Below, piece by piece: positions 1 through 57,285 of a stretch of 62,171 bases of DNA. Below the pieces are notes generated by a model, which saw only the letters and a list, made by a program, of their open reading frames with translations, did not search any database and had not been told where the DNA came from. The translations under genes and the position numbers were made by a program. The stretch covers positions 1-62,171 of the forward strand of contig CDRNVI010000198.1 of the NCBI GenBank assembly GCA_977017575.1, given 5' to 3'. The DNA comes from Paramoeba atlantica (Eukaryota; Protista; Discosea). Position 1 is the first letter of the stretch. The number at the start of each line of letters is the position of its first letter.

Positions 1-935
1 CCTAAACCCTAAACCCAAACCCTAAACCCTAAACCCCTAAACCCTAAACCCTAAACCCTAAACCCTAAACCCTAAACCCTAAACCCTAAACCCTAAACCC
101 TAAACCCTAAACCCTAAACCCTAAACCCTAAACCCTAAACCCTAAACCCTAAACCCTAAACCCTAAACCCTAAACCCTAAACCCTAAACCCTAAACCCTA
201 AACCCTAAACCCTAAACCCTAAACCCTAAACCCTAAACCCTAAACCCTAAACCCTAAACCCTAAACCCTAAACCCTAAACCCTAAACCCTAAACCCTAAA
301 CCCTAAACCCTAAACCCTAAACCCTAAACCCTAAACCCTAAACCCTAAACCCTAAACCCTAAACCCTAAACCCTAAACCCTAAACCCTAAACCCTAAACC
401 CTAAACCCTAAACCCTAAACCCTAAACCCTAAACCCTAAACCCTAAACCCTAAACCCTAAACCCTAAACCCTAAACCCTAAACCCTAAACCCTAAACCCT
501 AAACCCTAAACCCTAAACCCTAAACCCTAAACCCTAAACCCTAAACCCTAAACCCTAAACCCTAAACCCTAAACCCTAAACCCTAAACCCTAAACCCTAA
601 ACCCTAAACCCTAAACCCTAAACCCTAAACCCTAAACCCTAAACCCTAAACCCTAAACCCTAAACCCTAAACCCTAAACCCTAAACCCTAAACCCTAAAC
701 CCTAAACCCTAAACCCTAAACCCTAAACCCTAAACCCTAAACCCTAAACCCTAAACCCTAAACCCTAAACCCTAAACCCTAAACCCTAAACCCTAAACCC
801 TAAACCCTAAACCCTAAACCCTAAACCCTAAACCCTAAACCCTAAAACCCTAAACCCTAAACCCTAAACCCTAAACCCTAAACCCTAAACCCTAAACCCT
901 AAACCCTAAACCCTAAACCCTAAACCCTAAACCCT
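1..935. repeat. Telomeric array (CCCTAAA)n / (TTTAGGG)n, about 133 units
   Basis: Near-perfect 7-bp tandem repeat from base 1 to 935, with C-rich strand on + as expected for a left chromosome end. A few variant units: CCCAAA near 14-19, an extra C near 34-37, an extra A near 845. Confidence 0.98.
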
Positions 936-3900
936 TTAGTCTTCCTAGTATATCCTTCAAGTCTTCTAAATGTTTTTCAAAGGAATTGCTGAAACAGATA
1001 ATGTCATCAACATATGCAAAACAGCATCTCCATATGAGTCCATTCAATACAGCTTCAATATAACATTGTTGTGTTGCTGGAGCATTACACAATCCAAATG
1101 GCATTGAGAGAAATTCCCAAAGTCCATATTTGCTTGTAAAAGCTGTTTTTTCAACATCTTGTTGTTGGATCGGAATTGACCAAAAGGCATCTGTCAGATC
1201 AATTGATGAGAAATATGAGGAATTGCCAAGGGCTCCAAGAATTGTATCCATTCTTGAAAGAGGATATGCATCCTTCTTTGTGACATTATTAAGACGACGA
1301 AAATCAACACAAAATCGGATTTTGCCATTCTTTTTGTCTGCCAATAGAATTGGTGAAGCCCATGGTGAGGTTGAAGGTTGAATTACTTTTCTTTTCACCA
1401 TTTTATCAATATGTTTCCAAATAATGTAATCTTCAGCAGGAGTTGTTTTTCGAGGAACTGTGCAAACCAGTTTAGCAGTTGCATCAGTTTCGATCTTATG
1501 CTCCATTGCTGTTGTTTGGGTCAATGGATCTTCTCTTTTTTGTTCATCCCAAAGGTCTTTAAATTCAGTTAGCAGTTCTGCTAATTTAATTTGTTGTTGA
1601 GAATTCAAGTTTGTAGCATTGATTTGAAATGTCTCATATGCTTCTTTTAATTCAGATTTCATTTGATTTTCTTCACCAAAATCCAGTGGTTCATTTTCTG
1701 GATTTGCAAGGAGAGCAAAAACTTGATTTATCTTTGATTTGTCAAAAGCATCTGTTTCCATTGTTGGATTTATTTTGGGTTGTTTTTAACTTTGAATTGG
1801 GGAGATTTCTTCTGCAAAATTTTCTGAAAATTTGCGTTTTCATCCCTCTTTAAGAAACAACATCTTATTTTCTTTAGCAACCCAAGCATCAAGCCAAGGG
1901 CTGTTGAGAGCTTTAAAATAGTTTGCTCCCACTTTTGAATTAAATGGTTTCTTTTCTTTTGATTTTTGATCTTGTTCTTTTGTATTCACCTTTTTTACAG
2001 GTTGAATATCTTGAAGATCAAGGAGCGAACGATTTGATATTTGAAGAAGTTCTGTTTGTTCAACATCATCATCGTTAATCTCATGTATGGAACCAAGTTC
2101 CCATCCTTTTTTAAGTTTTACATATTTGTTTGTTGGATTAATTACCAATATGTTTGATTGATAGATGTTTTTCTTTCTTCCAGGTCTTTCTTTTTGGGTA
2201 ATTGAGATAAGACCTTGTGAAGCAATTAATTTGCCTTTTCCACTATCTCTTGGAAAGAAGAAACATTCCGGTGATGAGACTTGTCCTTTTGCTGTGAGTG
2301 GCACTATCACAGCCGATCTTGGGGGAATGCCACTGGTTACTGCTGTTGTGACCAGGGTCTTACTTCTCCGGTTCCTTCTGTCATCAAGAAGTTCCAAGTC
2401 CGGACTAAGTTCATTCATTTGAAGATTATTTTCTTTTGGCTTTGCCTGAACAAGCTTTTTTTCTTGCCACAGAATATAATTGCTATCCGTTCCAAGTTTT
2501 AGTCTTTTCATAGCTGGCCAGCCTATCAATGTTTGAACAGGAAGGTGGTCGAATATGAAGAACCATAAATTGGCTTCAAAATGTGAGAATTTTACTCTCA
2601 GTAAAACTTCTTCATTTACAACAACTTTGGAAGAATTTCCAACTGTGACTTTTAAAGTATGGATTTTTCTTCTTCTTAATATTTGAATACCAGGTCTTTT
2701 TAATTATTGTAAACTGATTGCATTAATTCCAGATCCTGTGTCAAGGCATGTTGTTGAATTTAGATTGCCTATTTTCGACTCAAATTCCAGAGGTCCCCCG
2801 ACATCACGGCTTTCTTCTCCTTTTTGTTCAATTTGACTTAAGGAGAGGATGCGGATGGGTTCTGAATTGGTTAATTCTGGAGAATTAATTGCCATTTTGT
2901 AATGTTCAGTTGGGATATCATGGACATCCATAAATTGTCTATTTTCTTTCTCTTGTGTATTTTCTTTCTCTTGTGGAGAAGGATTTTTACTTGAATTTTT
3001 ACAAGAAAGATCAGAATATGGTGTATCATAATTTATTGGAGTTTGTTGAGTTTGACCACTACTTTGTATGAAGAGACTTTTCAATTCATTGAATTGTTGG
3101 TTCATCTTTTCATCCATTTTGTGGGCAAATTCTTCAAATTCTTGTTTTCTTTTTTTATGTGGGTCTTGGTCTCTATTTGAACCTTGACCTTGTTGTTTTT
3201 GTTGTCCTCTTGGACCTTGATCTTTCAACCCTCTTTTCCTTTTTCTGGTTACTTTGCAGCGTTGCGTAATGTGGGTATCTTGATTACCACAATGGCGGCA
3301 ATATTTCAACCCTTTTTGCATCGCTTCTTTCACCAAAGGACAATTTTTGGGTACATGACCAAAGTCTTCACAGGCTCGGCATTGCAACTCCTGTGCCCTC
3401 TTTCTTGCCTCTTTCAGCTCTTGTCCATTAGGGTTCAAGGCTAATGAAAGGGAGTTTCAGGTCTTATCAGCGAATTGTTTTGTTGGGTAGTCCTTTTGGT
3501 ACTGGACAGTCAGAGCAATAGAAAGCATGTCACCTCCTTTAGCTGTAGCTTTCGCTCCCTCCCATGTCCGATGGTACGAAGAATCTTGTACTTGGGCTTC
3601 GAAAATGTCTCTAACTTCTTCAAGTTGGGTGTCCTCACTCCCCTTTTCCTTGACAGCAATGTTCAAGAACTTCATTGTATGAGTCATGAAGTCCTCAGAG
3701 ATATCGAACTTGTACGAGTAAAGAGCACTTGTATCAGTATCAAGGGGTTTGTAAATGTGACTTGAAGCCATGCAGAGATCAAAAACCAACTTCTGGAAGG
3801 TTTGAGGATGACCGATGATGTCAAGTCCGAATGCTATCAACTTGGGTCGTGCGAGGGTTACAGTGAGTTCATTATTTGGCCACCCATTGGTTTTCCAAAC

Positions 3901-4422
3901 TTGATAAAGAGCATCAAGCTTTTCTGTTTTGGTTAGATTCTTTGAGAGGCCATCGATTGCTCTTTCGATTGATTGTTGGAGAGCTTTGTCAGCCACAAAG
4001 GATTTCTCGTCTGGTATCGGTACCAAAGCATCCTTTCCCAAACGATGGTTTTGTGTTGTTGAAGATGAAGAGATACTTTGATCGAGTTCTTGGATTAGAG
4101 TTCATCTTGCACCCACATTCGAAGCAGCAACCATGACTTTGGGCAGGGGAATCAATTCAACTTTGCCTTTGTCATTGACCTTTTGCTGGTAGAGGGTGCC
4201 ATTTATGACTACTAGTTGCATTTCCAAGGAATCGGGAAGACCAGAAGGATCAGAATGAAGGGGAGAGGGGGTACTAGAATCAAGAGGGGAATCACTTTCA
4301 GTGCTGGGAGTTTTGCCAAGAGAAGGAGGACTGAGCTTGGGCATTCCAGGATGTTTCTTAGGCGACTTTTTCGTCTTACCAGAGGTCTCTCCTTCTTGTT
4401 TCTTATCTTTATCCCTTCCCAT
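936..4422 (-). pseudogene. gag-pol pseudogene (single frame, five in-frame stops, truncated in RT)
   Basis: ORFs 4102-4473, 3457-4041, 2704-3438, 1840-2529 and 913-1761 are all in one frame. Stops: TGA 4102-4104, TGA 3457-3459, TAA 2704-2706, TGA 1840-1842, TAA 1786-1788. Likely start is MGRDKDKK at 4422. Confidence 0.9.
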
Positions 4423-4802
4423 TGGAGCCTCCAAATGTAAAATGATAGTTTTTACAGTGAATAATAAAAGCAATCAAAATGTTGTTGTGCAATTTGAGAA
4501 TTTGAAAAGGTGAACATTGGACCGTTTCAGAATTTGGTGGTTCCACGTCAGCACTCATTCTCCTTTATTTAGTAAATCAAAAAGGCATAGATGTCTTTAT
4601 CAAGGAGTTGTTGATTTCTCCATTGCACCCTAATTGAAAGAACAGAAGAGTTGAAAGGTTTGGAAAGATACATGATAGATTGTTTGATTTACCAATGAAC
4701 TTTTTTATTCCATATTTCAAGTGAATGTTTTAGTTTGTTATTCTTTTTTTTTTTCTTTATTCACAAACTATTAAAAACAACACCACCAGATCAATCATTT
4801 TA

Positions 4803-5169
4803 CTTTTCCACACACAATCAAAAGAAAGAATTGAGAAAATCAAAGAAAAACAAAAGGTTTCTTTTTTAGCACACCTTATGCTTCGATGTTTTTCGTCTCT
4901 TTTGGATAGAATTGTCACCTTAATCAATTCGATTCGTAAATCTTTCGAAAAAATTCGTTAGTTTTTTGCAATGTATAGAAATTGATTATTTCACTTTTCC
5001 ACACACAATCAAAAGAAAGAACTGAGAAAATCAAAGAAAAACAAAAAATTTCTTTTTTAGCACACCTTATGCTTCAATGTTTTTTGTCTCTTTCAGATAG
5101 AATTGTCACCTTAATCGATTTGATTCGTAAATCTTTTGAAAAAATTCATTAGTTTTTTGTAATGTATAG
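4803..5169. repeat. Two 176-bp direct repeats (period 191 bp) in the retroelement leader/LTR region
   Basis: 4803-4978 and 4994-5169 align without gaps (cttttccacacacaatc...aatgtatag), with 12 substitutions by eye. Confidence 0.9.
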
Positions 5170-6250
5170 GGCTCAAAAGGAATATCTGAAATCACTTCAA
5201 CTCCAAAAAATGCCACAATTGCAAGTGCAGCTTGAGCTCACCCCCATGTGTGTTGTTGTAAGTGGTTGTTGGAAGTTTTATTTTTGTTTTTGTTGTGATT
5301 TTTTGTTTTGTCATGTAATTTTCAGTGGAAATGTACACTTGGAGGGAGTGTCAGGTTGTGAGAGTGTTTCAACTCTTGAAGATGTTTCTCAATTTGGTGT
5401 TGTTTTGTTGTTTCCTTTGCATTTTCCCAATTCAGGAGCATTTTATTTTGCCCAAAATTGTGTTTCATCATGAATTTGGTTTGTATTGCTTTTGTTGTGC
5501 TTTGAGCAGAAGTTGTAGAAAACCATAGTAAATTTAGGAGATTTAAACTGATCTGTTTCCTTGTTTTGTTTGTATTAGTAGTAGAGATGCACCACTCTGT
5601 ACTCCATCAATTGAAGATCCAAGAGTTGAAACATATTGTTGGAACCAGTGAAGAGTGGATTGTTCTAAATTCAACTTTGTGGAGTTGGATCAATTCCCCT
5701 CTAGTCTGTGAACTAGGTGCCTTCTCAATCCCTTCAATGAATTTTGTAAGAAAGTTCCAAGGAAACACACAGTGACTACTCCTCACATATTGTTTCCAAC
5801 TCAAAGTGCTCTTGAAAATGCTCTAATCCTCTCTCTGTCATTATTACTAAGGACATTCAGGAATGGATTCCCCAGTCCCAAGAGAAGGATTTTGTGAAAA
5901 ACTTTATGGAAGATGACTTTCAAAGGAATGTTAAAGAACTATGTGTTTAAGTCTTAATTTATCTCCCCTTTCCCCAAGTCCTTTCTTTTCCCCCTTTTCC
6001 ATCTTAGTGAAGGTTTTTTAATTTCAATAAATGGCATCTGGTGTCTGACAAACAAAAAAAAAACCCTACTACATGACCAAGCTACATTGTACAGCACATT
6101 GTACAGCACATTTTAATTTTCTTTTTTTGTTTGAGCTGGTTTTCTAGTTAGTCCCTAAATCAAAAAAACAAAAAGTGAGATTCCATTTCTTTCCCACACA
6201 ATCATTATTTTAAAAATGAAAAAAATTGAAACAAAAAAAATGAAAAAAAA

Positions 6251-9200
6251 TCAAACCTTTAATTGAATGATTAGTTCAACAATGCTTTCATCTTTTGCAA
6301 CATCAAGTACTGTTTGTCCATTCTAAAAACAAGAAAAGAAAAGAAGTTCAAAAAAAAAAAGCTCATTTTTCCAATAACCCCACAAATAAAAAAATAGCAA
6401 AATAAAGAAATAAAAAAGAAAAAAAAAACATCAAAAAAAAAAAAAGAAAAAAAAACTTTGTTTTGAATATTAACATTGGCACCATACCCAATCAAAATCT
6501 GTACAATTTCTTCAAAACCATTAGAAGCAGCTATGTGAAGGGGGGTCCAACCATTCTAAAATATTAAAAAAGAAGTGTTAAAAAAGAGAAAAAAAATAAA
6601 ACAATTATAAAACCCATTAATTCCCCTCTCTATCACAGCAATATAAAAAAAGAGAATAGATTTTTAAAAAAAGAGAAAGAAAATGAAAACTTTATCTTGA
6701 TGATGTATGTCAGACCCATGTTCAATAAGAATTTTTACAACTTCTTCAAAATCTTTGGAAGCAGCTGCATGAAGAGGGCTCTGACCAATCTGAACATAAA
6801 AAGAAGTTTAAAAAAGAAAAAAACATATATCATATATAATATCAGAGAATAACCAACACAGATCAGAAACACCAAAAAAAGAAAAAAGAAAAAGAAACAA
6901 TATCAACAAAAAGAACCTTATTTCCAAGATCAACATTTGGTTTTCCTTTTTCCAATAAAATTTGAATAATTTGTTCATGTCCATTATGAGCAGCAATATA
7001 AAGAGGAGTTACTCCTTTCTTTTTACATTAAAAAAAAAAAATAGAAAAATGAGAAAGTGAAAAAAATGAGAAAATGAAAAAGAAAACACAATCAACAAAA
7101 TAACACCTTAGTTACAAGATCAACATTTGCTCCTCCTTTTTCCAATAAAATTTGAACAATTTGTTCATATCCTTCTTGAGCAGCAATAAAAAGAGGAGTT
7201 GCTCCATTCTTTTTACATTAAAAAAAAATAGAAAAATGAAAAATGAGAAAAAGAAAAAGAAAAAAGAAAACAATCAACAAAAGAACCTTATTTGCAAGAT
7301 CAACATTTGGTTCTCCTTTTTCCAATAAAATTTGAACAATTTGTTCATATCCTTTTTGAGCAGCAATATAAAGAGGAGTTGTTCCACTCTTTACATTTAA
7401 AAAGAGAAAAATGAGAAAGTGAAAAAAAAAAAGAAACAATCAACAAAAAAGAACTTGGTTTGCAAGATCAACATTTGCTCCACCTTTTTCCAATAAAATT
7501 TGAACAATTTGTTCATGTCCTTTAAAAGTAGCAACAAAAAGAGGAGTTACTCCATCCTTTACATTAAAAAAAAAAATAGAAAAATGAGAAAGTGAAAAAA
7601 AAAAAGAAACAATCAACAAAAAAGAACTTGGTTTGCAAGATCAACATTTGCTCCACCTTGTTCCAATAAAATTTGAACAATTTGTTCATATCCTTTTTGA
7701 GCAGCAATATAAAGAGGGGTTACTCCTTTCTTTACATTAAAAAAAAAAAATAGAAAAATGAGAAACTGAAAAAAATGAGAAAATGAAAAAGAAAAAAAAA
7801 AACACAATCAACAAAATAACACCTTAGTTACAAGATCAACATTTGCTCCTCCTTTTTCCAATAAAATTTGAACAATTTGTTCATATCCTTTTTGAGCAGC
7901 AATATAAAGAGGAGTTGTTCCATTCTTTTTACATTTAAAAAAAAATAGAAAAGTGAAAAAGTGAAAAAAAAAGAAAAAGAAAAAGAAACAATCAACAAAA
8001 GAACTTGGTTTGCAAGATCAACATTTGCTCCACCTTTTTCCAATAAAATTTGAACAATTTGTTCATGTCCTTCTTGAGCAGCAATATAAAGAGGAGTTGT
8101 TCCATTCTTTTTACATTAAAAAAAAAAATAGAAAAATGAGAAAGTGAAAAATAAGAAAAATGAGAAAAAGAAAAAGAAAAAGAAAAAGAAACAATCAACA
8201 AAATAACCTGATCTGCAAGATCAACATTTGGTTTTCCTTTTTCCAATAAAATTTGAACAACTTGTTCATGTCCTTCTTGAGCAGCCATAAAAAGAGGAGT
8301 TGCTCCATACTTTACATTAAAAAAAAAATAGAAAAATGAGAAACTGAAAAAAAAAGAAAAAGAAAAAGAAACAATCAACAAAATAACCTTCCTTGGAAGA
8401 TCAATATTTGCTCTTCCTTTATTCAATAAAATTTGAACAATTTGTTTATGTCCATTTTGAGCAGCAATAAAAAGAGGAGTTGCTCCATTCTACATTAAAA
8501 AAAATAGAAAAATGAGAAACTGAAAAAAAAAGAAAAAGAAAAAGAAAAAGAAACAATCAACAAAATAACCTGATCTGGAAGATCAACATTTGCTTTTCCT
8601 TTTTCCAATAAAATTTGAACAATTTGTTTATGTCCATTTTGAGCAGCAATGTAAAGAGGAGTTGCTCCATCCTTTACATTAAAAAAAATTGAAAAAATGA
8701 AAAAAATGAAAATGAAAGAGAAAAAGAAACAATCAACAAATAACCTTCTTTGCAAAATCAACACTTGGTTTTCCTTTATCCAATAAAATTTCAACAATTT
8801 GTTCATATCCATTTCGAGCAGCAAAAAAAAAAGGAGTTCTTCCATCCTTTAGTTGCAAAAAAAAATCGAAAAATGAGAGAAAGTGAAAAAAAAAAAAAAG
8901 AAAAAAAATCAAATTCAAAATATCAATCATAATATCATAATATCATAAAAAGAGAAGAAACCTTATCTGCAAGATCAACATTTGGTTTTCCTTTTTCCAA
9001 TAAAATTTGAACAATTTGTTCATATCCTTCTTGAACAGCAAATTGAAGAGGAGTTGTTTCATGGAACTAAATAAATTTTAATAAAAGATAAAGTGTTTTG
9101 TTCAAAAAAAAAAAAAGAGAAAAAGAACCAAAATGAATTTCAAAAAAGAAACAAAAAAGAAACAAAAATTGTTCTTATTGAAATTTAAAAAAAAAATGAA

Positions 9201-44974: not shown

Positions 44975-47099
44975 TAATACTGCTAAAAAAAAAAGAGAAG
45001 AGAAAAAAAGAGAAAAAGAAAAATGATAAAACCTCAGGTTGTGGTTCTGGTTCTGGTTCTCCTGTTAATGATTCTTCCATCTAAAGAAAGAGAAAAAGTG
45101 TTTCAAAAAAAAAGAGAGAAAAGAAAAAGACAATCACATTTTTCTTTTGGGAAAGGAAAAGAAAAAAAAGAAAGGAAAAAACAAAGAAACCTCAACAAAC
45201 TGGAGACGATCTAACATCCCCTCAAGTTCAGCAATATTTTCTACACCATGTGCCAATTTTTCAATGAAACCTGGAATGGAAGAGAGAAGAAAAGAGAAAA
45301 GAGGGAGAGAAGAGAGAAGGAGGAGACATGGGATGAGGACAGAGAGAGAGGAGAAGAAGAGAGAAAAGAAAAGAAAAGAAAAGAAAGAAAAGAAAAGAAT
45401 GAAAAGAAAAGAGAATAAACAAAAATCAAAAAACAAACTCATTGGTTCATCAACTCCAATTTGACTCAAAGACATACCATTGAGAGTCTCGTCGATTGAT
45501 GTTCTCAAACACACCTATTTTGCAATAAAAAAAAAGAAAAGAGAGGAGAATCAGAGAGAAAGAAGAAAAAGAAAAAAAAAAAAGAGAAAGAAGAGAAAGA
45601 AGAGAAAGAAGAGAAAGAAGAGAAAGAAGAGAAAGAAGAGAGAGCAAACATCCGATTCAATTGTACGATCAACTTCAAGTTCACGAGTTAACTGAATGGC
45701 TCTCCCAACTTTTTCAGCCCTCACTTTAAATACAGCAGCTAATTTTTTCCACTGATAGAAAAATTAGAAAGAGAGAAAGAGAGAGAAAGAGAGAGAAAAA
45801 GAAAAGAGTCAAGAAAAAGAACAAGAAAAGAAAACACAAACAGTTTGGTCAGGGCGACTGAGAAGAATAGCAGAATACAAATTCAAATATTTTTCGCAAT
45901 ATGGTGTGAACTGAACAAAAAGATTAAAAGAGAAAGAGAAGAAAGAGAAGAAAGAGAAGAAAGGGAAAAAGAGAACAAAAGAAAAGAAAAAGAAATAAAA
46001 ACCTCAATTGCTTTTAATGTGTGATATTCTGCTTTTTGGTATGCTCTATTTAATAAAAATTAAGAAGAGAATAAAGAAAGAGAGAGAGAGAGAAGAGAAA
46101 GAGAGAAAGAGAGACAAACCCACAACGATAATAAAAAAGACCAAAAAGATATCGAACACGACAATCTCGATCAGAGAGAGATTTTAATGTTTCCAATTGA
46201 CTTTTCATTTCTTTTACCTATTTTATTTATTTATTAAAAAGAGTTTCAGAAGAGAAAAGAAAGAGGAGAGAAAAAAGAGAAGAAAGAGAGAAGAGAGAAA
46301 AAACAGTTTTGCCAAGTTGGTGTGACGACACAAAAAGATAGAGAAAAAAAGAGAGAAAAAAACATCAGGATCTTCAAGAGAAAAAACAGCTTTTCCAAGT
46401 TGGTGTGACGACCTCCAATCACACAAAATGATAGAGAAAAAAGAAAAAAATAGAAAAAATAGAAAGAAAGAAAGAGAGAGAGGAGAGGAAAGAGAAAGAA
46501 AGAGAGAGAAAAATAACATCAGGATCTTCAAGAGAAAAAACAGCTTTTCCAAGTTGGTGTGACGACCTTCGATCGGTGCGTTTTAACAACATAAAACGAT
46601 AGTGACTCACCGCTAAATTGTACTGTGTTTCTAAATCTTGTGGGTGTGAACTTATGATTTCTTTATATAGTTTCTGTTTTTTTTTTGGGAGAGAGGAGAG
46701 AGAGAGGAGAGAGAGAGGAGAGAGAGGAGAGGGAGAGGAGAAAGAGAGGAGAGAGGAGAGAGTGGAGAGAAGAAAGAGAGGAGAGAGGAGAGAGAGAGGA
46801 GAGGGAGAGAAGAGAGAGAGGAGAGGGAGAGAAGAGAGAGAGGAGAGGAGAGGAGAAAGAGAGGAGAGAGGGGGGGGGAGGAGAGGAGAAGGAGAGAAAG
46901 AGGTGATTAGAAAGAAGGAGAAAAATAAGAATAAGAAAAGAAAGAGAGAAAAAGAAAAAAGAGAGAGAAGAAGAAGAAGAAGAAGAAGAAGAGAGAGATA
47001 GAGGAAAACCTTTGCAGCTTCATACAATTTTAAAGCAGTTTCTTCTCCTCCAACTCGCCTTTCCATAGATCTTGCTTGTGAGTGATAGAAATTGGCCTA

Positions 47100-47158
<59 letters not shown>

Positions 47159-47483
47159 AGAATCAAGAAAGAAAGAAAGAAACAAAGAAAGAGAAAAGAA
47201 AAAAAAAACTTGAGCATTTTTGGCAATTTTCATTCCTTTAATTTTAACACGAATTTTCATTAAATCCGCCAAATTAAATGGTTTTTTGGCTTCATCTGGA
47301 AACTTAAAACTCCCATCCATTCTTTCTAAATGTTGTAATAAAGATATCAAAAAAAAAGAGATTTGGAAAATATGATTTGGTTTTCAATGGAAAAGAGAAT
47401 TGATAAAAACAAAAACAAACTAATTTTTGAAAGTATTGGAGAACAAGATTGAAATGGAGAAATGGAAACAATAATAACAATAA

Positions 47484-47514
<31 letters not shown>

Positions 47515-47633
47515 AAAAACAAACTAGTATAAGAAAGCATAGGAGAACAAGATTGAAATTGAGAAATGGGAACAACAACAACAACAATAAATAAATAAAT
47601 AAATAAATAAAATAAATAAATAAATAAATAAAT

Positions 47634-47664
<31 letters not shown>

Positions 47665-50475
47665 CAAACTAGTATAAGAAAGCATAGGAGAACAAGATTG
47701 AAATTGAGAAATGGGAACTTCAGAGATGCGAAACTCCATCAACTGAACCAATCTCCGAAATAATAAATACATTGGTGTTGGCCTGTTTTTTTTTATTTTT
47801 ATTTTTTATTTTTTATTTTTTATTTTTTATTTTTTATTTTTTATTTTTTATTTTTTATTTTTTATTTTTATTTTTATTTTTATTTTTTATTTTTATTTTA
47901 TTTTATTTTATTTATTTTATTTATTTTATTTATTTTATTTATTTTATTTATTTTATTTATTTTATTTATTTTATTTATTTTATTTATTTTATTTATTTAT
48001 TGATTATTCTTATTGATTATTCTTATCCTTATTTATTATTCTTAGTTATATTATTTTTGTTGGTTGATTTAATTCTTATCTCTTTCTCTTACCCTCTCTC
48101 TTACAAAAAAAAACAATAAAAAAAAAGAAAAGAAAAGGAAAGAAAAAAACCGATTTTCAAGATCAGAAGATTCCAAAATTTCTTGAACTTGTTCGACTGT
48201 AAATTCTTTTCGTTGAATAATCACAGAATGACTCATTCTCTCGACCCCTACAAATTTTATTATTGTAAATATCTATATATAGAAATAAAGTTATCTATAT
48301 TTAGAGATAACTTTATCTATTTAGATTTTCATTTAAATCTTTTTCTAATAATGTATTTTTTATAGAAAAAGAATCCTAATTTCTCTTATTTTTTTTTCTC
48401 TTTTCTCTTTCACTTTTTCTTTCTCTCTCTCTTCTCTCTTCTCTCTCTCTTCTCTTTCTTCCTCAATCAAAAGTTTTTATTTTATACCATCTCTTGGTCG
48501 TGACGGACCACGATATCCCAAAATCCCACGAACTAAAAAGAGACACGTATCCACCTTAAAAGTGAAATGTTAAAAAGAGAAAAGGAGAAAAAGAAAAGAG
48601 AGAAAGAAACAAAAAAAAGAGAAGAAATAACAATAAATAATAAATAAATAAATAATAAATAAATAATCAAATAATAAATAAGGAAGAAGACTTTTTCTGA
48701 ATACTAAATCAAGAATAAATAAATAAATAATAATAAAAGAAAAAAAAGAATTGAAAGAGAGAGAGAAAAAGAACCAATTGATTACGAATAAATCCGAGAG
48801 TGTTTTGTAAAATAGAGCGAATTGAGTTCCAGTTGTCTTCTGTCTATTTTTGTTTTGTTTAGGAAAAGAATAAGAAGTTAGAAAGAAAAAAAGAAAAAGA
48901 AAAAGAATAAAAAGCGAGAAAAAAGAAAAAAGAAAAGAAAAAAAAGAATAAAAGAAAGAAAAGGAAAAAAGAAAAAGAAAAGGAAAAAAAAAAGAAAAAA
49001 AAAAGAACCTCTTTTCTCTTTTTAACATCATCATCATATCGAAAAAAGATATTTAACTCATTGACCTTTTAGAAAGAGTTCTGAAGTTAGACAACTTTGA
49101 CATAGAACTTCGAAAACACAAATTTAAATAACAAATAATAATAATAAATAATAAATAATAAATAATAAATAATAAATAATAAATAATAAATAATAAATAA
49201 TAATAAATAATAAATATTAATAATTATAAATAATAAATAATAATAATTATAAATAATAAATAATAATAAATAATAAATAATAATAAATAATAAATAATAA
49301 ATATTAATAAATAAGAATAAATAAGAATAAAATACCAAAAGAATACGATAAGGAGCTTCAACAGACATAGACAATTTTGACATCGAAGTTCGAAAACACA
49401 AATTTAAATGATTTTTGATCGCTCTCGCAACTGCTTCGATACAAAAACATATTGCAGTTGGTATGTAACCTAATTTAGAGAGAGAGAAGAGAGAAGAGAG
49501 ATATTATTTTGAGGTACCTGTTTCTGAACAAAGGAGAGAAGAAAAGAGAAAAAAGAAAAAAGAAAAAAGAAAAAAGAAAAAAGAAAAAAGAAAAAAGAAA
49601 AAAGAAAAAAGAAAAGAAAAAAAAAAAAGAAAAAAAAAAAAAAAAGAAAAAAAGAAAAAAAGAAAAAAGAAAATAAAAAATAAAAAATAAAAAATAAAAT
49701 TACAATAAGGATCACGCAAAAAATTCCTCTTGGCAGTCAAAATATAATCAACAATAAAACCAATATATCGAAGATTTACTCCTTTTCGATGAATTGCTGC
49801 TGTTATATCTAACCCCTTTTTTTTTTTTTTGTTGTTGTTGTTTTTTTTTTTGAAAAGAAAGGGGGATGAGTTTTTTTTTTGATGGGATGAGAAATAATCA
49901 GATTTATGTTGGAAAAACTTTAAAACAAAAACAAAAAACATAAATATAAATTTAAACTTAAAAATAAATAAAAAACCAAAAAAAAAACAAAAAAAACCAA
50001 AAAAAAAACAAAAAAAAAACCTTATAAGGAGAAGGGAACATATCCGCAACAAAACTCTCCAAAATAGAACCAGAAGATTGATTCAAAGAAGAAGAAGAGG
50101 TGCTTCTTCTTTCTCTCTCTTTCTCTTTTGAAACTGAGAGATGTAAACTGTTTGATAATTCTGGTCTTCCTTTTGTGTCCCTTGAATCGAGAAGTGAATC
50201 TAAAAGAGAGAGAAGAGAGAATGAAGAGAAGGAGAAACAAGAAAGAATAAAAAGAATTTAGCAAAAGAAAGAGAAAAAGAGAAAGAGAAAAAGAAGGAAG
50301 AAAAAAAAACCCAAATTCAATTTTAGAGAAAGAGAAAGAAAAGAGAGAGAAAGAGAGAGAGAGAGAGAGAAAGAAAAAGAGAAAGAAAAACCTCTAAAAT
50401 CAAGATCAGGAGTACTAGAGAGCAACTTAGAATTAGGCTCAAGACACATATATCTTTGTCTCGCATCCATAATTG

Positions 50476-50516
<41 letters not shown>

Positions 50517-50630
50517 AAAGAGAAAGAAAGGGGAAAATACCTCTAAAATCAAGATCAGGAGTACTAGAGAGCAACTTAGAATTAGGCTCAAGACACATAT
50601 ATCTTTGTCTCGCATCCATAATTGAAAGAA

Positions 50631-50665
<35 letters not shown>

Positions 50666-51261
50666 AGAAAAAGAAAGGGAAAAATACCTCTAAAATCAAG
50701 ATCAGGAGTACTAGAGAGCAACTTAGAATTAGGCTCAAGACACATATATCTTTGTCTCGCATCCATAAATGTGTGTGTTGTCACTCTCGCTACTTCTGGT
50801 ACGTATTCCTGATTTGGAAATGAATTTTTGAGAGAGAGAGGAGGAGAGAGGAGGAGAGAGAAAGAAAAGAGAAAGAAAAGAGAAAGAAAAGAGAAAGAAG
50901 AGAGAAGAGAGAAGAGAGAAGAGAAAGAAGAGAGAAAAGAGAGAGAGAGAGAAGAGAAAGAGAAGAGAGAGAGACAGAAGAGAGACAGAAGAGAGAGAAG
51001 AGAGAGAGAAGAGAGAGAAGAGAAAAAAAAAAAGAGAGAAACTTTAACAAGATAAGTAGCAGCATAACAAATATCGCGATACATTTCTTTACATTTTGGG
51101 TCAAATCCCCCCATTTTTGTCTCGTGAATTGAATCTGGAGTTAAAAATTTCTTGTGATCTCTGTTTTTATTATTTTTTTTTTTTTGTTTTTATTATTTTT
51201 TGTTTTGTTTATTTATTTGTGGTTGTTGTGGGAAAATATAAAATAGAGAGAGGTGAGATAA

Positions 51262-51302
<41 letters not shown>

Positions 51303-51521
51303 GTGAAAGAACTTGTGAAAGGCTTTAAGAAACTCAGGTCGAAAACGACACACTAGTGGCGCAGCTCTTAATCCCTAAAAAAAAAATTATTTTATTTTAT
51401 TTATGATTTAATTTTAAAAAGAATTAATCAATAAAAGAATGAATAAATAAAATAATAATAATAACCTATTTTTCTATTTTATGAATATAAATGAAAAAAT
51501 CCATTCAAAAAAAAAGAGAAA

Positions 51522-51556
<35 letters not shown>

Positions 51557-52082
51557 AGAGAAAACAGATAGAAAAAGAAAAAGAAAAAGAAAAAGAAAAG
51601 AGAAAGGAACAAACATTAAACCAATCATGCATAAAAATAGGATCAGAGGGCATAGCTCTTGCAAGATCCAGAAAATAAAATCGCTCGTCTTTTCACAAAA
51701 AAGAAATTAATTTGAAGATAAAAAATGAAATTATTTTCAAAGACAAAAAAGAAATGAAGAAAGTGAATTATGAAAGTGAATTAATTCTTAATAGAAAGAA
51801 GAGCCAATGATTTTTATTATTATTTTTTTTTAAAATAATAAAAAACAAATCAAAAAAAAGAAAAAAAGAAAAAAGAAAGAAAGAAAAAGAAAAAAAAAGA
51901 AAAAAAGAAAAGAAAAAAACCAGTGCCAATGTGTCCTTCAACATCAAAAGCAGAAGAAAGAATCACTTCCGCTTCCTATAAAAAAATACATTTTAATAAA
52001 AAAAAATGTTTAAATAAAAAAATATTTTAATAAAAAAAACTTGTTTTTGGGCAGCATATTTGGCCATTTGATGAGGACAAAG

Positions 52083-52113
<31 letters not shown>

Positions 52114-52431
52114 AAGAGAGAAAGAGAGGAAGAGAAAAAGAGAGAGAGAAAGAGAGAAGAGAGAACCCCAGGAAAAGGACCACTGGGAGCCCAAGAGCGA
52201 ACTTGATGAGATCTCAAATAAAGTTTTTGAGCGGCATATTTTGCCATTTGATCAAAATCATTTGATTTGTTGAAAACGTTTCTTCCTGCGTCTTGGCTTC
52301 CATACACTAATGAACTTCCTGTAAAAGAAAGAGAGAGGAGGGAAGAGAGAGGAAGAGAGAGGGAGAGAGAGAAAGAGGGGGGGAAATTAGGAAAGAGAAA
52401 GAAAAGAGAGGAGAGAGGAAAGAGAAAGAAA

Positions 52432-52462
<31 letters not shown>

Positions 52463-52614
52463 AGAGAAAGAAAAAGAAACCAAATTTTGAAGAATTAATT
52501 GGGAGTAAAGAACAAGCAATTAAACGATATCCCAAAAAATTAACGAGTGTACAAAGAGGAAGATGAAGCCCTGGTGTGTTTGTACTAAAATATGCTGATA
52601 ACCCCAATAATTCC

Positions 52615-52645
<31 letters not shown>

Positions 52646-55600
52646 GAGAGGAGAGAGAGAGAGAGAAGGAGGAGAGAGGGGAGAGAGAGGAGAGAGAGGG
52701 GAGAGAGGGGAGAGAGAGGAGAGGGGAGAGAGAGAGGAGAGGGGAGAGAGAGGGGAGAGGAGAGGGGAGAGAGGAGATATGAAACAAAATTCAAAAATGT
52801 GGAGAGAGAAAAATGAATTGATTTTTTTAAAAAGAAATAAATTATTTTAAGAGAGAAAAAAAACTAAAATAATAAAATACAAATAAATAATAACACAAAT
52901 AAAAATAAAAAAGAATAAAAATAAAAAAGAATAAAAATAATAAACCAATCCTGCTGCTTTTGCAGCAAAATGATCAGCACCATATAATCCATGTACATCC
53001 ACAGCAAATTTGAAAACTATTTTAAAATTTATTAATAAATGAGAAAGAATAAAATAATTCAAAAAAAAAAGAAAAATAAAAAGAAAAATAACAAAAGAAA
53101 TAAAAAAAGAAAAAAAGAAAAAAAGAAAAAAAGAAATAAAAAAAGAAACCAATATTATTTACAACAAATTTTTCTCCACCCGCAATTCCACCAGTATCCG
53201 CTGGCGGGATTGTCTTTACAACTTGTTCTTTCTATTTTAAATAAAATAAAAAAAAAGAAAAAGAAAAAGAAAATGAATCAAAAGAATCAGAAAATAAATA
53301 AAAATAAAACTAAAATCAATGAAAATAAAATGAATAAAATAAAATAATTTTTTTTTTTTCTTCGAGTGAGCGAAAACTTGATCTTCCCTTTCTCTTTCTT
53401 TCTCTCTCTTTTCTCTCTTTCTTTCTTTTTCTCTTTTTTCTCTTTTTTCTCTTTTCTTTTAAAAATGATTGAAAACAAACGAGTCTCCATTCGCTTCCGT
53501 AAATTCTTTTCGCCCATTTTTTCGTTTTTAAAAACCTTTTGAAAAAAAATGAATTTAAGATTTTTATCTTTTTTTTTTTAGATTCGCTTAAAAAACAAAA
53601 GAAAAAGAAAAAAAAGAAAAAAAAGAAAAAAAAAGAAAAAAAAACAATTCTTAAATAAAAAGAAGAAGAAAAAAAGAAAAGAAAAAGAAGAAAAAAAGAA
53701 AAAAAGAAAAAAAGAAAAAAAGAAAAAAAGAAAAAAAGAAAAAAAAAAACCTTTCAAGAATAATGATTCGGCCATACATTTTGGCAACAGAATGAAAATC
53801 TTGAATTAATTGGAGTAAACAACTATTTAATTCCGGTTTTTCCTGTACAAAAAAGAAAGGAAAAGAAAAAGGAAAGAGGAAAAAGAGAAAGAGAAAGAGA
53901 AGGAATGAGGAAGAAAAAAATTACATTTTTTGAGAAAAATCGAATTTTAAAAGAATAAAAAATAGACTCAAATAAAAATAAAATTAAAAAATAAAATTAA
54001 AAAATAAAATAAAATCAAATAAAATATATTAAAAATAAAATAAAAATAAAACAAAAAAAAAACTTGAAGAGTTTCCCATTTTTCAAGAGAATAAATTTCG
54101 TGCATGACTTGTTGAAATTGTTCATTCCAATTTCGGTGAAGATTTGTTAGTGTGTCTTGTGGTTTTTGTGCTTTTTTTTTTGAATGAGAGAGAGAATGGA
54201 GAGAGAGGAGAGAAAGAAATGAAAGAAATAAAAGAAATTCAAGAAAAAGATAATAAATAAATAAATAAATAAAATAATAAAATAATAAAATAATAAAATA
54301 ATAAAATAATAAAATAAAATAAAATAAAAACCAGAAGGAGGAGGTTTTGGCAATTCATCTTCATACTCAACCAATATTTTCCTTCCTCCAACTCCTTTCT
54401 CTTTCTCTTTCTCCCTCTCCCTCTCCCTCTCTTTCTCTCTCTCCCCTCTCTCCCTCTCCCCTCCCTCTCTCTCTCTCACCTCTCTCTCACAACTCTCTCC
54501 CCCCTCTCTCTTTCTCTTCTTCTCTTCTTCTTCTTCTTCTCCTTCATAACCACTGCTACTTCCACTTTGAAAAATCATCGATTGTCGAAGATCTGATCCA
54601 TCAAATGATGCATCTGTAAAATATGATTCTACATCTTCTTCTTCTTCTTCTCCTTCTTCTTTTCTTTCTTCTTCTTCTTTTCTTTCTTCTTTTCTCTCTT
54701 CTTCTTTTCTTTTTTCTTCTTTTTTTTCTTCTTCATTTTCTTCATAAACACTTAAAAGCTCATAACCATCTTTTAATAGAACATCTTCTTCTTCTTCTTC
54801 GGTCTCCTCCTCTTTCTCTCTCTCCTTTTCCTTTCCTTTTTCTCTTTCTCCTCCTACCTTTTCCCCCTCTCTCTCCCTCTCTCTCCCTCTCTCCCTCTCT
54901 CTCTCCCTCTCTCTCTCCATCTCTCTCTTCATCTCTTTCGCAGCAGAATACTCCTCCTGAAATAACCTAATTTGTTCATCCAAAATCTCTTCACTCTCTT
55001 CACTCTCTTCTACTACTCTTTCTTCTTCTTCTGCGTTCGATCTTTTGAGACCGCAATATACTGCTTGTCTGATGTCCCATGATTCCATACTGCAAAAGAA
55101 AGAGAGAGAGAGAAAGAAAGAGAGAGAGAGAGGGAGAGAGGGGAAGGAAGAGAGAATGAGTTTGGGGTGGTTGGATGGGAGAGAATTAAAAGAAAAGAAA
55201 AAGAAAAAAGAATAAAGAAAACAAAATAGAAAACAAAAAAATAAACCAAAAAATAAAAACCAAAAGTCCCATTTCAAATAAATAAAAAAAAAAAAGAAAA
55301 CAAAAAACCCAAAAACCCAAAAACAAATAAATCAAGTTTTTTTTTTATTTAAAAAAAAAATAAAATTAAAAGAAGAAGAAGAAGAAAAAAAACAAAACCT
55401 TTTTTTTGAAGAACCAAATGTATAAACACCATCACCTTTTATTGATTTTTTTAATGCTTTTGATTCTTCTTTTACCAGTTTTTCGATATCTCCAAAATTT
55501 TCTCTTTCTAAAAAGGAGAAAAATGAGAAGAGAGAGGGGAGAGAAGAAAGAGAGAGGAGAAGGAGAGAGGGAAATGATAAAAAAATGAGGCGAAAAGAAG

Positions 55601-56974
55601 AGAATTCGTAGATTCGAAATTATTATCTTTCAAGATAAATAAATTAAATAAGAAATACAAAATAAATTAAATAAGAAATAAGAAATAAATGAGGAATAAT
55701 AAAAATAAAATAATAAAAATAAAAATAAAAATAAAAATACAAAACCAATAGTTTGATCATTTTTCAAATGAACAGAACGACGAATCCAAAGAAAAGCCTC
55801 AAAGCACAAAGAATAGATTATATCATTATTTATATCATTTATTTTTTTTCATTTATTTCGATTAAATAATTATAAATAATAATAAAATAAAGAAAGAAAG
55901 AATAATTAAAATAAGAAAAGAAGAAAATAAAAAAACCAATTGATTCATCATTTTTCAAATGAACAGAACCACGAATCCAAGGAAAAGCCTCAGTCTTTCT
56001 CAAAGCACAAAGAATAGATTATATCATTATTTATATCATTTATTTATACCATTTATTTATATCACTTTTTATTGATATTATATTAAATATTTTTATAAAT
56101 AATAATAAATAATAATAAATAATCAATTAATAATTAAAAGAAGAAAAGAAGAAAATAAAAAACCAATTGAATCATCATTTTTCAAATGAACAGAACCACG
56201 AATCCAAGGAAAAGCCTCAGTTTTTCTCAAACCATAAAGTTGAATTATATTATCCAGCGAATGTGAAAGTATTTTTCTTCTTAATTCTCTATTTTTATTT
56301 TTATTATTATTTATTTTATTATTATTTATTTTATTATTATTTATTTATTATTTATTTATTATTTCTTTCTTTCTTTATTCTTTATTCTTTATTCTTTATT
56401 TGTAATTCTTAGGAACTATTTTTCTTTCTTTTTCTTTCTCTTTTTCTCAAAGCATAAAGTTGAATGATATTATCCAGTGAATGTGAAAGTATTCTTAATT
56501 CTCTATTTTTATTTGTTTATTAATTATTTATTATTCATTATTAAAATTTATTAATTATTTCGACGATTATTATGTCTTATTATTTCTTTATTTTTTTTTA
56601 TTTTTATTTTTATTAACTATTATTCTCAAGTTAAATTATAATTATCCAATGAATGTGAAAGTATTTTTCTTCTTCATTCTCTATTTTTCTTCTTTCTTTC
56701 TCTTTCTCTTTTCCAACGAACACTTTTCTTCTCAATTTTATTTATTGAGAGAAAATATCTTATTCCTCTCAAAAGAGATCTCCACCTTAAGAGGAGAAAA
56801 GAAAAGAGAAAACCTCTTTTCTCTCTTTCTTTTCTCTCTTTCTTTTCTCTCTCTTTCTTTCTTTTTCGAATTTCCAAAGTGAAAACAAAGAAAAGATGAA
56901 CAAAAAAAAATCTTTCAAAAGAAATTCTGAAAACAAAACTGAATTTGATCGGTTGTCCAGGGATCTTCATCCAT
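44975..56974 (-). CDS. Large CLU-domain (Clustered-mitochondria family) protein with TPR-like C-terminal region, more than 25 exons
   Basis: Exons translate to RNWNEQFQ, DFHSVAKMYGRIII, GGIAGGEKFVVNNI|FKFAVD, AAKAAG|ELLGL, LVYGSQDAGR, SAFDVEGHIGTD|ERFYFLDLARAMP, FRPEFL, IHRKGVNLRYIG, EAVARAIK, EAPYR. Both ends are approximate and some junctions are unresolved. Confidence 0.8.
50391..50769 (-). repeat. Three identical 82-nt copies of an exon 3' end, each followed by a GT donor
   Basis: cctctaaaatcaagatcagg...tcgcatccataa starts at 50391, 50540 and 50687. Confidence 0.92.
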
Positions 56975-57285
56975 TTCTCTCCTTTCTTAATCAGAAAAGA
57001 AGTGAAAGAAGAGAGAAGAAAAGAGAAGAAAAGAGAAGAGAAAGAGAAAGAAAAAGTTGGTTCACAAAAAATAAAAAAAGCGAGGAAATTAAGTTGTGCG
57101 TTTTTGTATTTAAAAAATAATATTTTGGAATAATTCGATTTTTATGTGTAAAATGACTCGGAACAATTTTTCTTGTGTTTCTTTTTTTTTCTTTCGATTT
57201 TCCTCATTTTCTTCTCTTTCTCTCTTTCTCTTTTCTCTCTTCTCTCTTCTCTCTTCTCTCTTCTCTCTTCTCTCTTCTCTCTCTC

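Follow-up and report, generated by a model that had tools for sequence, protein, structure and literature searches.

Partial copies of exons lie in the introns of a CLU-domain gene of Paramoeba atlantica. We consider it probable, at roughly two chances in three, that these echoes arose by recurrent small tandem duplications spanning exon-intron junctions, were hidden in introns and are decaying there. The amoeba-like gene occupies the minus strand at about 45033-56290 of the window, i.e. the whole analysed stretch of 62,171 nucleotides. A blastn self-comparison with low-complexity sequence masked yielded seven families of direct local repeats in 10.4 kb, each with two or three copies and together involving six exons (Table 1). 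The original prediction had claimed partial copies of at least six exons in neighbouring introns, and the direct repeats were found where it had placed them.

Layout of the exon echoes and their host gene

Families A, B, D, F and G each comprise a partial exon, a splice site and adjoining intron, while C and E are pieces of 42 and 30 nt from the interior of exons, without a splice site or an alignable intron part. The claim that the copies usually include the splice site thus holds for the five former families and fails for C, E and echo A3. In A, B, D and F the intron downstream of the intact exon holds one or two repeats of a segment that runs from within the exon through its 3' end and donor GT into the start of the intron. 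In G the 5' part of the exon and the sequence upstream of it are repeated upstream of the intact exon. Downstream echoes with a 3' part and donor, and upstream echoes with a 5' part as in G and in one further locus (L027, see below), are what junction-spanning duplication predicts. The copies are arranged head-to-tail with offsets of 83-420 nt. TRF reported a period of 147-149 nt with 3.0 copies and 93-94% matches at 50333-50768, and a period of 104 nt with 2.2 copies at 47403-47635. Where homology supports the gene model, each of the five echoes is found in the downstream intron; those of A, B and D are located at the 5' side or in the middle of long microsatellite introns. Echo C alone comes close to the next acceptor, lying 31 nt before it rather than abutting it.

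Table 1. Repeat families, echoes and echo-bearing exons of the CLU-domain gene (window coordinates)
Feature	Position	Strand	Basis
Family A, three copies	46294-46568		blastn self-comparison
Exon bearing family A (source 46518-46574 + donor)	46518-46673	-	single open frame, alignment
Echo A2: exon 3' part + donor GT + intron start; exon part identical except junction codon	46337-46420	-	
Echo A3: older 36-nt copy without donor; 1 synonymous (GGA/GGC) + 1 non-synonymous (GCT/ACT) difference	46294-46329	-	
Family B, three copies	47403-47718		blastn self-comparison
Exon bearing family B (source 47670-47718 + donor)	47670-47782	-	
Echo B2: 49 identical exon nt + donor + intron microsatellite	47479-47573	-	
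Echo B3: older, with donor; 2 synonymous + 6 non-synonymous differences across full exon part	47403-47469	-	
Family C	49088-49129 vs 49368-49409		blastn self-comparison
Exon bearing family C (internal source 49368-49409)	49336-49469	-	
Echo C: 42-nt internal fragment; 2 synonymous differences + Thr/Ser	49088-49129	-	
Family D, three copies of about 147 nt	50334-50768		blastn self-comparison
Exon bearing family D (source 50688-50771 + donor)	50688-50808	-	
Echoes D2 (50475-50624) and D3 (50334-50475): 84 exon nt + donor + CT-microsatellite	50334-50624	-	
Family E	52043-52072 vs 52223-52252		blastn self-comparison
Exon bearing family E (internal source 52223-52252; CLU domain)	52167-52318	-	Pfam CLU E=1.2e-4
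Echo E: 30-nt island in 190-nt intron; differs only at three four-fold Ala third positions	52043-52072	-	
Family F, three copies	55695-56239		blastn self-comparison
Echoes F2 (55938-56027) and F3 (55756-55801 core): downstream 3'-partial copies with donor	55745-56030	-	
Family G, three copies	56221-56695		blastn self-comparison
Echoes G2 (56441-56504) and G3 (56628-56682): upstream 5'-partial copies	56441-56695	-	
Putative 5' coding exon (G1F1), source of families F and G; 5' boundary provisional	56164-56290	-	single open frame

Every exon of the gene was aligned with every intron by the Smith-Waterman method. Five adjacent exon-intron pairs scored 22.5-81.5, while the 870 non-adjacent pairs had a mean of 8.1 (sd 2.1) and a 99th percentile of 14.2. 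As a set of duplications the echoes are far beyond chance and statistically solid.

The echoes form a continuum of divergence. A2, B2, D2 and D3 show no difference in 49-84 exon nucleotides apart from the junction, where D2 and D3 have a single deviating base in common. A3, C, E and G2 differ by 5-10% (A3 by about 6%), B3 and F3 by about 15% (B3 by about 16%). In addition, F3 carries a 10-nt deletion, and G3 is frameshifted with two stops. Each three-copy family contains one young and one old echo, which points to repeated rounds of duplication. The gene thereby offers a compact natural series of young-to-old duplicate splice sites, from 0% to about 15% diverged, which could be used to ask how the spliceosome chooses among several identical donors.

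We propose that tandem duplications with units of about 80-290 nt recurred in a gene with microsatellite-saturated introns, either by slippage or by unequal exchange with minimal homology. Of the two breakpoints, one would fall within an exon and one in the intron next to it. The complete exon, along with its splice site, would be left undisturbed, and a shortened copy of it, in most cases accompanied by a second splice site, would land inside the intron and leave with it, presumably without any function. Existing copies may seed further rounds, giving rise to the three-copy families with their young and old echoes, and the copies would erode through point mutation and microsatellite growth. 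The frameshift and stops of G3, the echo donors that are out of frame or preceded by stops, and the lack of any match outside the locus support a reading as decaying tandem duplicates. Gene conversion with second-order selection on the echo was also considered and was rejected by reasoning, because frequent conversion would keep the copies identical, yet they have diverged by 7-10%.

The gene model was built by hand from GT-AG boundaries and open frames and runs from 56290 to 45033 in about 32 short exons, separated by introns that are mostly CT- or AT-microsatellite. A single open frame runs through nearly every modelled exon, including all those bearing echoes; the few insecure boundaries (around 54063 and 53231) touch none of the echoes. 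Pfam searches were run on each exon of the model separately. PF13236 (CLU) matched at 52197-52619, with 34.2 bits for 52482-52613, above the cut-off of 24 bits, and 22.5 bits for 52167-52316, just under it. PF12807 (CLU-central / eIF3_p135) matched at 49720-49815, with 23.1 bits for 49705-49806 and a cut-off of 22 bits. The CLU_N domain was not found in this exon-by-exon search. Tblastn with homologues produced matches at 53216-53151, 53020-52949, 52616-52494 and 49812-49750, and the homologues from Amoebozoa agree with the modelled exons and frames. By its PF13236 and PF12807 domains the host is a gene for a CLU-domain protein. For the putative 5' coding exon no homologue was found elsewhere; its phases fit those of the next two exons (1+2 and 2+1 with 55507-55399 and 55089-54332).

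Synonymous differences between echoes and exons

The original prediction held that echoes and exons differ mostly at synonymous positions, with a tally of 11 synonymous to 5 non-synonymous changes. Its three codon examples were exact (GCA/GCC, GCC/GCT and GCT/GCC in E; two synonymous changes plus Thr/Ser in C; two synonymous changes plus Gly/Ala in G2). The tally itself is reproduced when alignments are trimmed to their best cores, but full alignments give about 13:19. By the Nei-Gojobori method, the full local alignments of 12 comparisons had Sd of 13.5 and Nd of 19.5 at 139 S and 506 N sites, with pN/pS of 0.40; counted as single differences, 13 of 32 (41%) were synonymous. Local alignment drops the most diverged ends and so favours clean-looking cores; the end of B3 alone adds one synonymous and three non-synonymous differences.

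These counts were compared with two nulls. With both copies drifting neutrally, 22% synonymous differences were expected by Nei-Gojobori counting (P 0.006), and 17% when the same substitution types were placed at random (P 0.0005); the neutral null is thus rejected. With the exon lineage constrained at an omega of 0.1, the corresponding expectations rose to 33% (P 0.18) and 25% (P 0.028), and the observed pN/pS stood against about 0.55 expected with constraint on the exon lineage alone (P 0.18). The premise of the original prediction that neutral decay leaves one quarter of the differences synonymous is wrong, because half of the divergence between exon and echo builds up in the real exon, and there synonymous changes alone are retained. 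Against the corrected expectation of 25-33% the observed 41% is barely above, or compatible with, a freely decaying echo next to an exon under purifying selection (P 0.03-0.18), i.e. a modest and mostly expected excess. The excess would then result from the exon adding synonymous changes only and the echo adding random ones, plus small-number noise. The number of differences is too small to show more than ordinary selection on the exon. Comparisons of an exon with a dead copy are expected to be biased towards synonymous changes without any special template, which corrects a tempting inference.

One observation counts against the decay reading: under random placement the synonymous count is marginally high even with a constrained exon lineage.

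The surplus is unevenly distributed. In the junction-spanning families 8 of 26 differences were synonymous compared to 24% expected (P 0.27), and these families fit the ordinary decay model. C and E carry the surplus with five synonymous differences out of six, the sixth being conservative, while 1.3-1.8 synonymous ones were expected (P 0.0003-0.003; Fisher P 0.029 versus the other echoes). This subset of two out of 12 comparisons, with six differences in total, was picked post hoc.

Two observations on these short echoes also count against the decay reading. Echo E has changed at 3/3 four-fold sites and at 0/27 other positions, a rare outcome for a freely decaying copy. For C and E, moreover, an origin by junction-spanning duplication is something that we infer rather than see.

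Templates and splicing of the echoes

The original prediction took the echoes to be copied from a protein-constrained template (another allele, a paralogue or mRNA) or to be recently functional alternative exon halves. The 45.7-Mb assembly speaks against such a template. In pattern and DNA searches of the assembly every echo matched its own locus only, the 30-nt and 42-nt echoes E and C having no other match at up to 3 mismatches, and a DNA search of the assembly with the whole region returned simple repeats only. The closest paralogous exons are 38-42% identical at the protein level. A scan of metagenome contigs with a 33-mer of the family D exon gave no match. A haplotype carrying the template may possibly have been collapsed in the assembly.

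Some echoes, above all C and E, could formerly have been coding, e.g. as duplicated alternative exons eroded by microsatellite indels, or could have been written from a constrained template missing from the assembly (a diverged allele, a lost paralogue or cDNA). The synonymous pattern of C and E, with changes in E at three four-fold sites only, agrees with such an origin. E lies exactly 180 nt from its source, the GT that follows it keeps frame and phase over an open extension of 126 nt, and indels plausibly erode sequence faster than point mutation at a locus that is 58% low-complexity. On the other hand, this signal comes from six differences chosen after the fact, the template is absent from 45.7 Mb, and the other nine echo comparisons look like decaying copies. 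Echo C is out of frame with its exon, as its offset of 280 nt is not a multiple of 3. No AG acceptor was found by eye between the exon and echo E, so that E is not an internal cassette exon. We therefore regard formerly coding or template-derived echoes as unlikely, although the residual signal in C and E keeps the idea alive at low probability. For these two echoes in particular, we are similarly doubtful, and slightly more so, that the coding-type pattern was written from a constrained template during break repair or marks the last islands of long-translated duplicate exons. If true and general, this would be a route for seeding introns with selected exon sequence, a raw material for alternative exon ends. 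Were the signal of C and E to hold genome-wide, it would suggest that constrained sequence is copied into introns, which goes beyond the present data.

Could the echo donors instead serve as alternative 5' splice sites that provide longer in-frame isoforms in a regulated splicing repertoire? Over a 17-nt context, the A2, B2 and D2 donors match the real ones completely or almost so. Use of the D2 donor would lengthen the exon by 147 nt without a stop or a shift of frame, so that a 26-residue peptide would recur behind a hydrophobic linker, and the GT just after E would add its 126 nt in frame. Yet read-through to the donors of A2, B2, B3, D3 and F2 is out of frame or contains stops. The length of the extension is divisible by 3 in three of seven cases, one of which (B3) includes a stop. 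This is close to the one third expected, so in-frame placement is attributable to chance, and the CT-rich spacers are incapable of containing stops anyway. Moreover, the inserts would be low-complexity peptides rich in Ser, Leu and Phe within a conserved CLU domain. Functional alternative splice sites are thus very unlikely. Reverse-complement echoes able to form splicing-control structures were not found apart from one intronic palindrome, and no known RNA families were found in the region.

Known duplications and the genomic setting

The supposition that the echoes represent an undescribed route does not stand up to the literature. Intronic sequences homologous to adjacent exons have been listed as cases of tandem exon duplication (Ivanov and Pervouchine 2022, PMC9013439, where a 2002 animal survey of tandem exon duplication is cited). 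As with the echoes, part of an intron shares homology with the exon next to it, in tandem and on the same strand, as a product of local genomic duplication. Tandem exon duplications, however, involve whole exons with both splice sites that are often mutually exclusive (PMC9013439), while the echoes are partial, have one splice site or none and are in several cases frameshifted or truncated. No family duplicates a whole exon with acceptor and donor: A, B, D and F repeat the donor side only and G the 5' side only. Nor are length, phase and open frame preserved across copies, as seen from G3, from the deletion in F3 and from the offset of C.

Introns can also arise when an exonic segment containing AGGT is duplicated in tandem (Hellsten et al. 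2011, PMC3265369; a potato RdRp case, PMC4974935). According to this model, short intragenic duplications are neutralised by duplicate splice signals (PMC3265369, PMC4974935), and the echoes likewise are short intragenic tandem duplications that leave the coding sequence intact. Yet in AGGT intron gain the breakpoints both fall in exons and duplicated exon sequence makes up the new intron, whereas here the introns already existed, one breakpoint is intronic and the duplication merely lengthens the intron. Intron ends of the kind expected from the AGGT model, with the 5' end equal to the start of the downstream exon and the 3' end to the end of the upstream exon, were not found in this gene; exons compared with their own upstream intron gave no match, all scores being 10.5 or less.

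Intronic minisatellites or variable-number tandem repeats share with the echoes a unit length of 100-300 nt, two or three copies arranged head to tail, a microsatellite-rich environment and repeated expansion. A constant head-to-tail period was indeed seen in both arrays reported by TRF. What sets the echo unit apart is that it takes in a splice site and a portion of a coding exon. The original prediction also linked the echoes to the ANK/LRR arrays, rightly insofar as the exon-per-repeat ANK array at 6874-9062 was built by events of this broad class, tandem duplications of exon together with intron at a period of 186 nt. In that array the duplicated units are entire exons in phase, every copy of which is still coding, while the echoes are out-of-register partial copies outside the protein. 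The echoes are a junction-spanning variant of the event class behind tandem exon duplication and tandem-duplication intron gain, and lack the defining features of both.

The locus stands out from its genome. Low-complexity sequence makes up 58% of it compared to a mean of 15% and a maximum of 35% in 24 other loci (a sample of 238 kb). About 7 duplication families in 10.4 kb contrast with about 0.9 per 10 kb in this sample, a rough count from match lists. Taken together, these values mark the locus as a hotspot for slippage-type events. No local duplication families were found in the 25 kb upstream of the gene, and the three other intron-bearing CLU paralogue loci, the exon boundaries of which are only roughly comparable with those of this gene, showed essentially no local duplication. 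With introns made up of microsatellite nearly throughout, a duplication becomes visible only if it takes in exon sequence. As the best reading we favor ordinary local tandem duplication in an unusually slippage-prone gene, with a small unexplained residue in two short echoes. A single gene thus shows how often small tandem duplications strike exon-intron junctions in a microsatellite-saturated region; such strikes are tolerated because an unbroken exon with its splice site is left.

The 238-kb sample yielded a single additional clear junction echo, of the upstream type (L027, 5196-5368 vs 5809-5977). It spans intron, acceptor and the first 23 nt of the exon. The other local repeats of the sample were mostly non-coding motifs, satellites or coding repeats, ORF-based frame assignment being too noisy there in a low-complexity genome. 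An assembly artefact, i.e. alleles or mis-joined reads set side by side so that the echoes would be absent from the organism's DNA, is highly improbable: the youngest copies (A2, B2, D2 and D3) differ from the exon copy in microsatellite length only, as alleles might, but at least four families have three copies, beyond what two haplotypes give, older echoes are 5-20% diverged and partly deleted, units of 80-290 nt are far smaller than haplotig duplications, a comparable echo exists on another contig (L027), and the contig reaches a telomere, which we take as a sign of long-read assembly. Nothing in the DNA resembled human sequence. At its beginning the window has about 930 nt of CCCTAAA telomere repeat, which places the CLU-domain gene 45-57 kb from the chromosome end.

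Placement of the echoes and a junction-spanning copy

All five echoes (partial exon copies within adjoining introns) in the homology-supported part of the CLU-domain gene (46294-52318) lay in the intron downstream of their own exon. This one-sided placement may be due to stronger selection against duplicate acceptors upstream of an exon. An echo spanning a splice junction was seen on another contig of the same assembly, in the sampled locus L027, where a CT-microsatellite intron, with its acceptor and 23 nt from the start of the exon, recurred 613 nt upstream, the copies differing by one Arg/Lys change.

Features of the CLU-domain gene, a paralogue and other sampled loci
Feature	Location	Strand	Description
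Junction-spanning echo	L027 5196-5368 vs 5809-5977		contig other than that of the window
Imperfect palindrome	window 48267-48329		63 nt, within a CLU-gene intron
Single exon	window 54332-55089	minus	758 nt; codes for 252-residue acidic Glu/Arg/Lys-rich low-complexity segment
CLU-domain paralogue	L011 (G000:C178:40500-48500), ORF 1517-5071		one open frame, 1185 codons
Telomere repeat	window 1-935		CCCTAAA (TTTAGGG-type), ~930 nt, at contig start
Satellite	L031 2944-8976 (G000:C184:110001-120000)		6 kb; basic period ~190 nt; GC 24%
Short non-coding motif	L020 8240-8286, 9062-9111, 9302-9325		three copies in 1.1 kb

Sequence composition and paralogues of the CLU-domain gene

Low-complexity sequence, made up of CT/AG and AT-rich microsatellites, accounted for 58% of the CLU gene (45033-57000), roughly fourfold the average over 24 other loci. 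Apart from the palindrome, no inverted repeat was found in the CLU-gene region. Many splice donors in the gene had the sequence GTTTTT, and the Glu/Arg/Lys-rich segment was located upstream of the CLU domain. The assembly contained at least five CLU-domain loci (contigs C178, C139, C200, C186 and C198). Because the paralogue in L011 occupied a single open frame, as opposed to about 32 exons in the window's CLU gene, intron density is strongly unequal among paralogues of one family.

Chromosome-end position and other repeats

With the telomere repeat at the contig start, the CLU gene lies within 60 kb of a chromosome end, as do both the ANK array and the LRR array. The L031 satellite had a higher-order unit of 577 nt with copies 99.9% identical. 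In the sampled locus L020 each copy of the short motif was followed by an ACACAC-rich stretch; a role as a promoter or a processing signal is possible.
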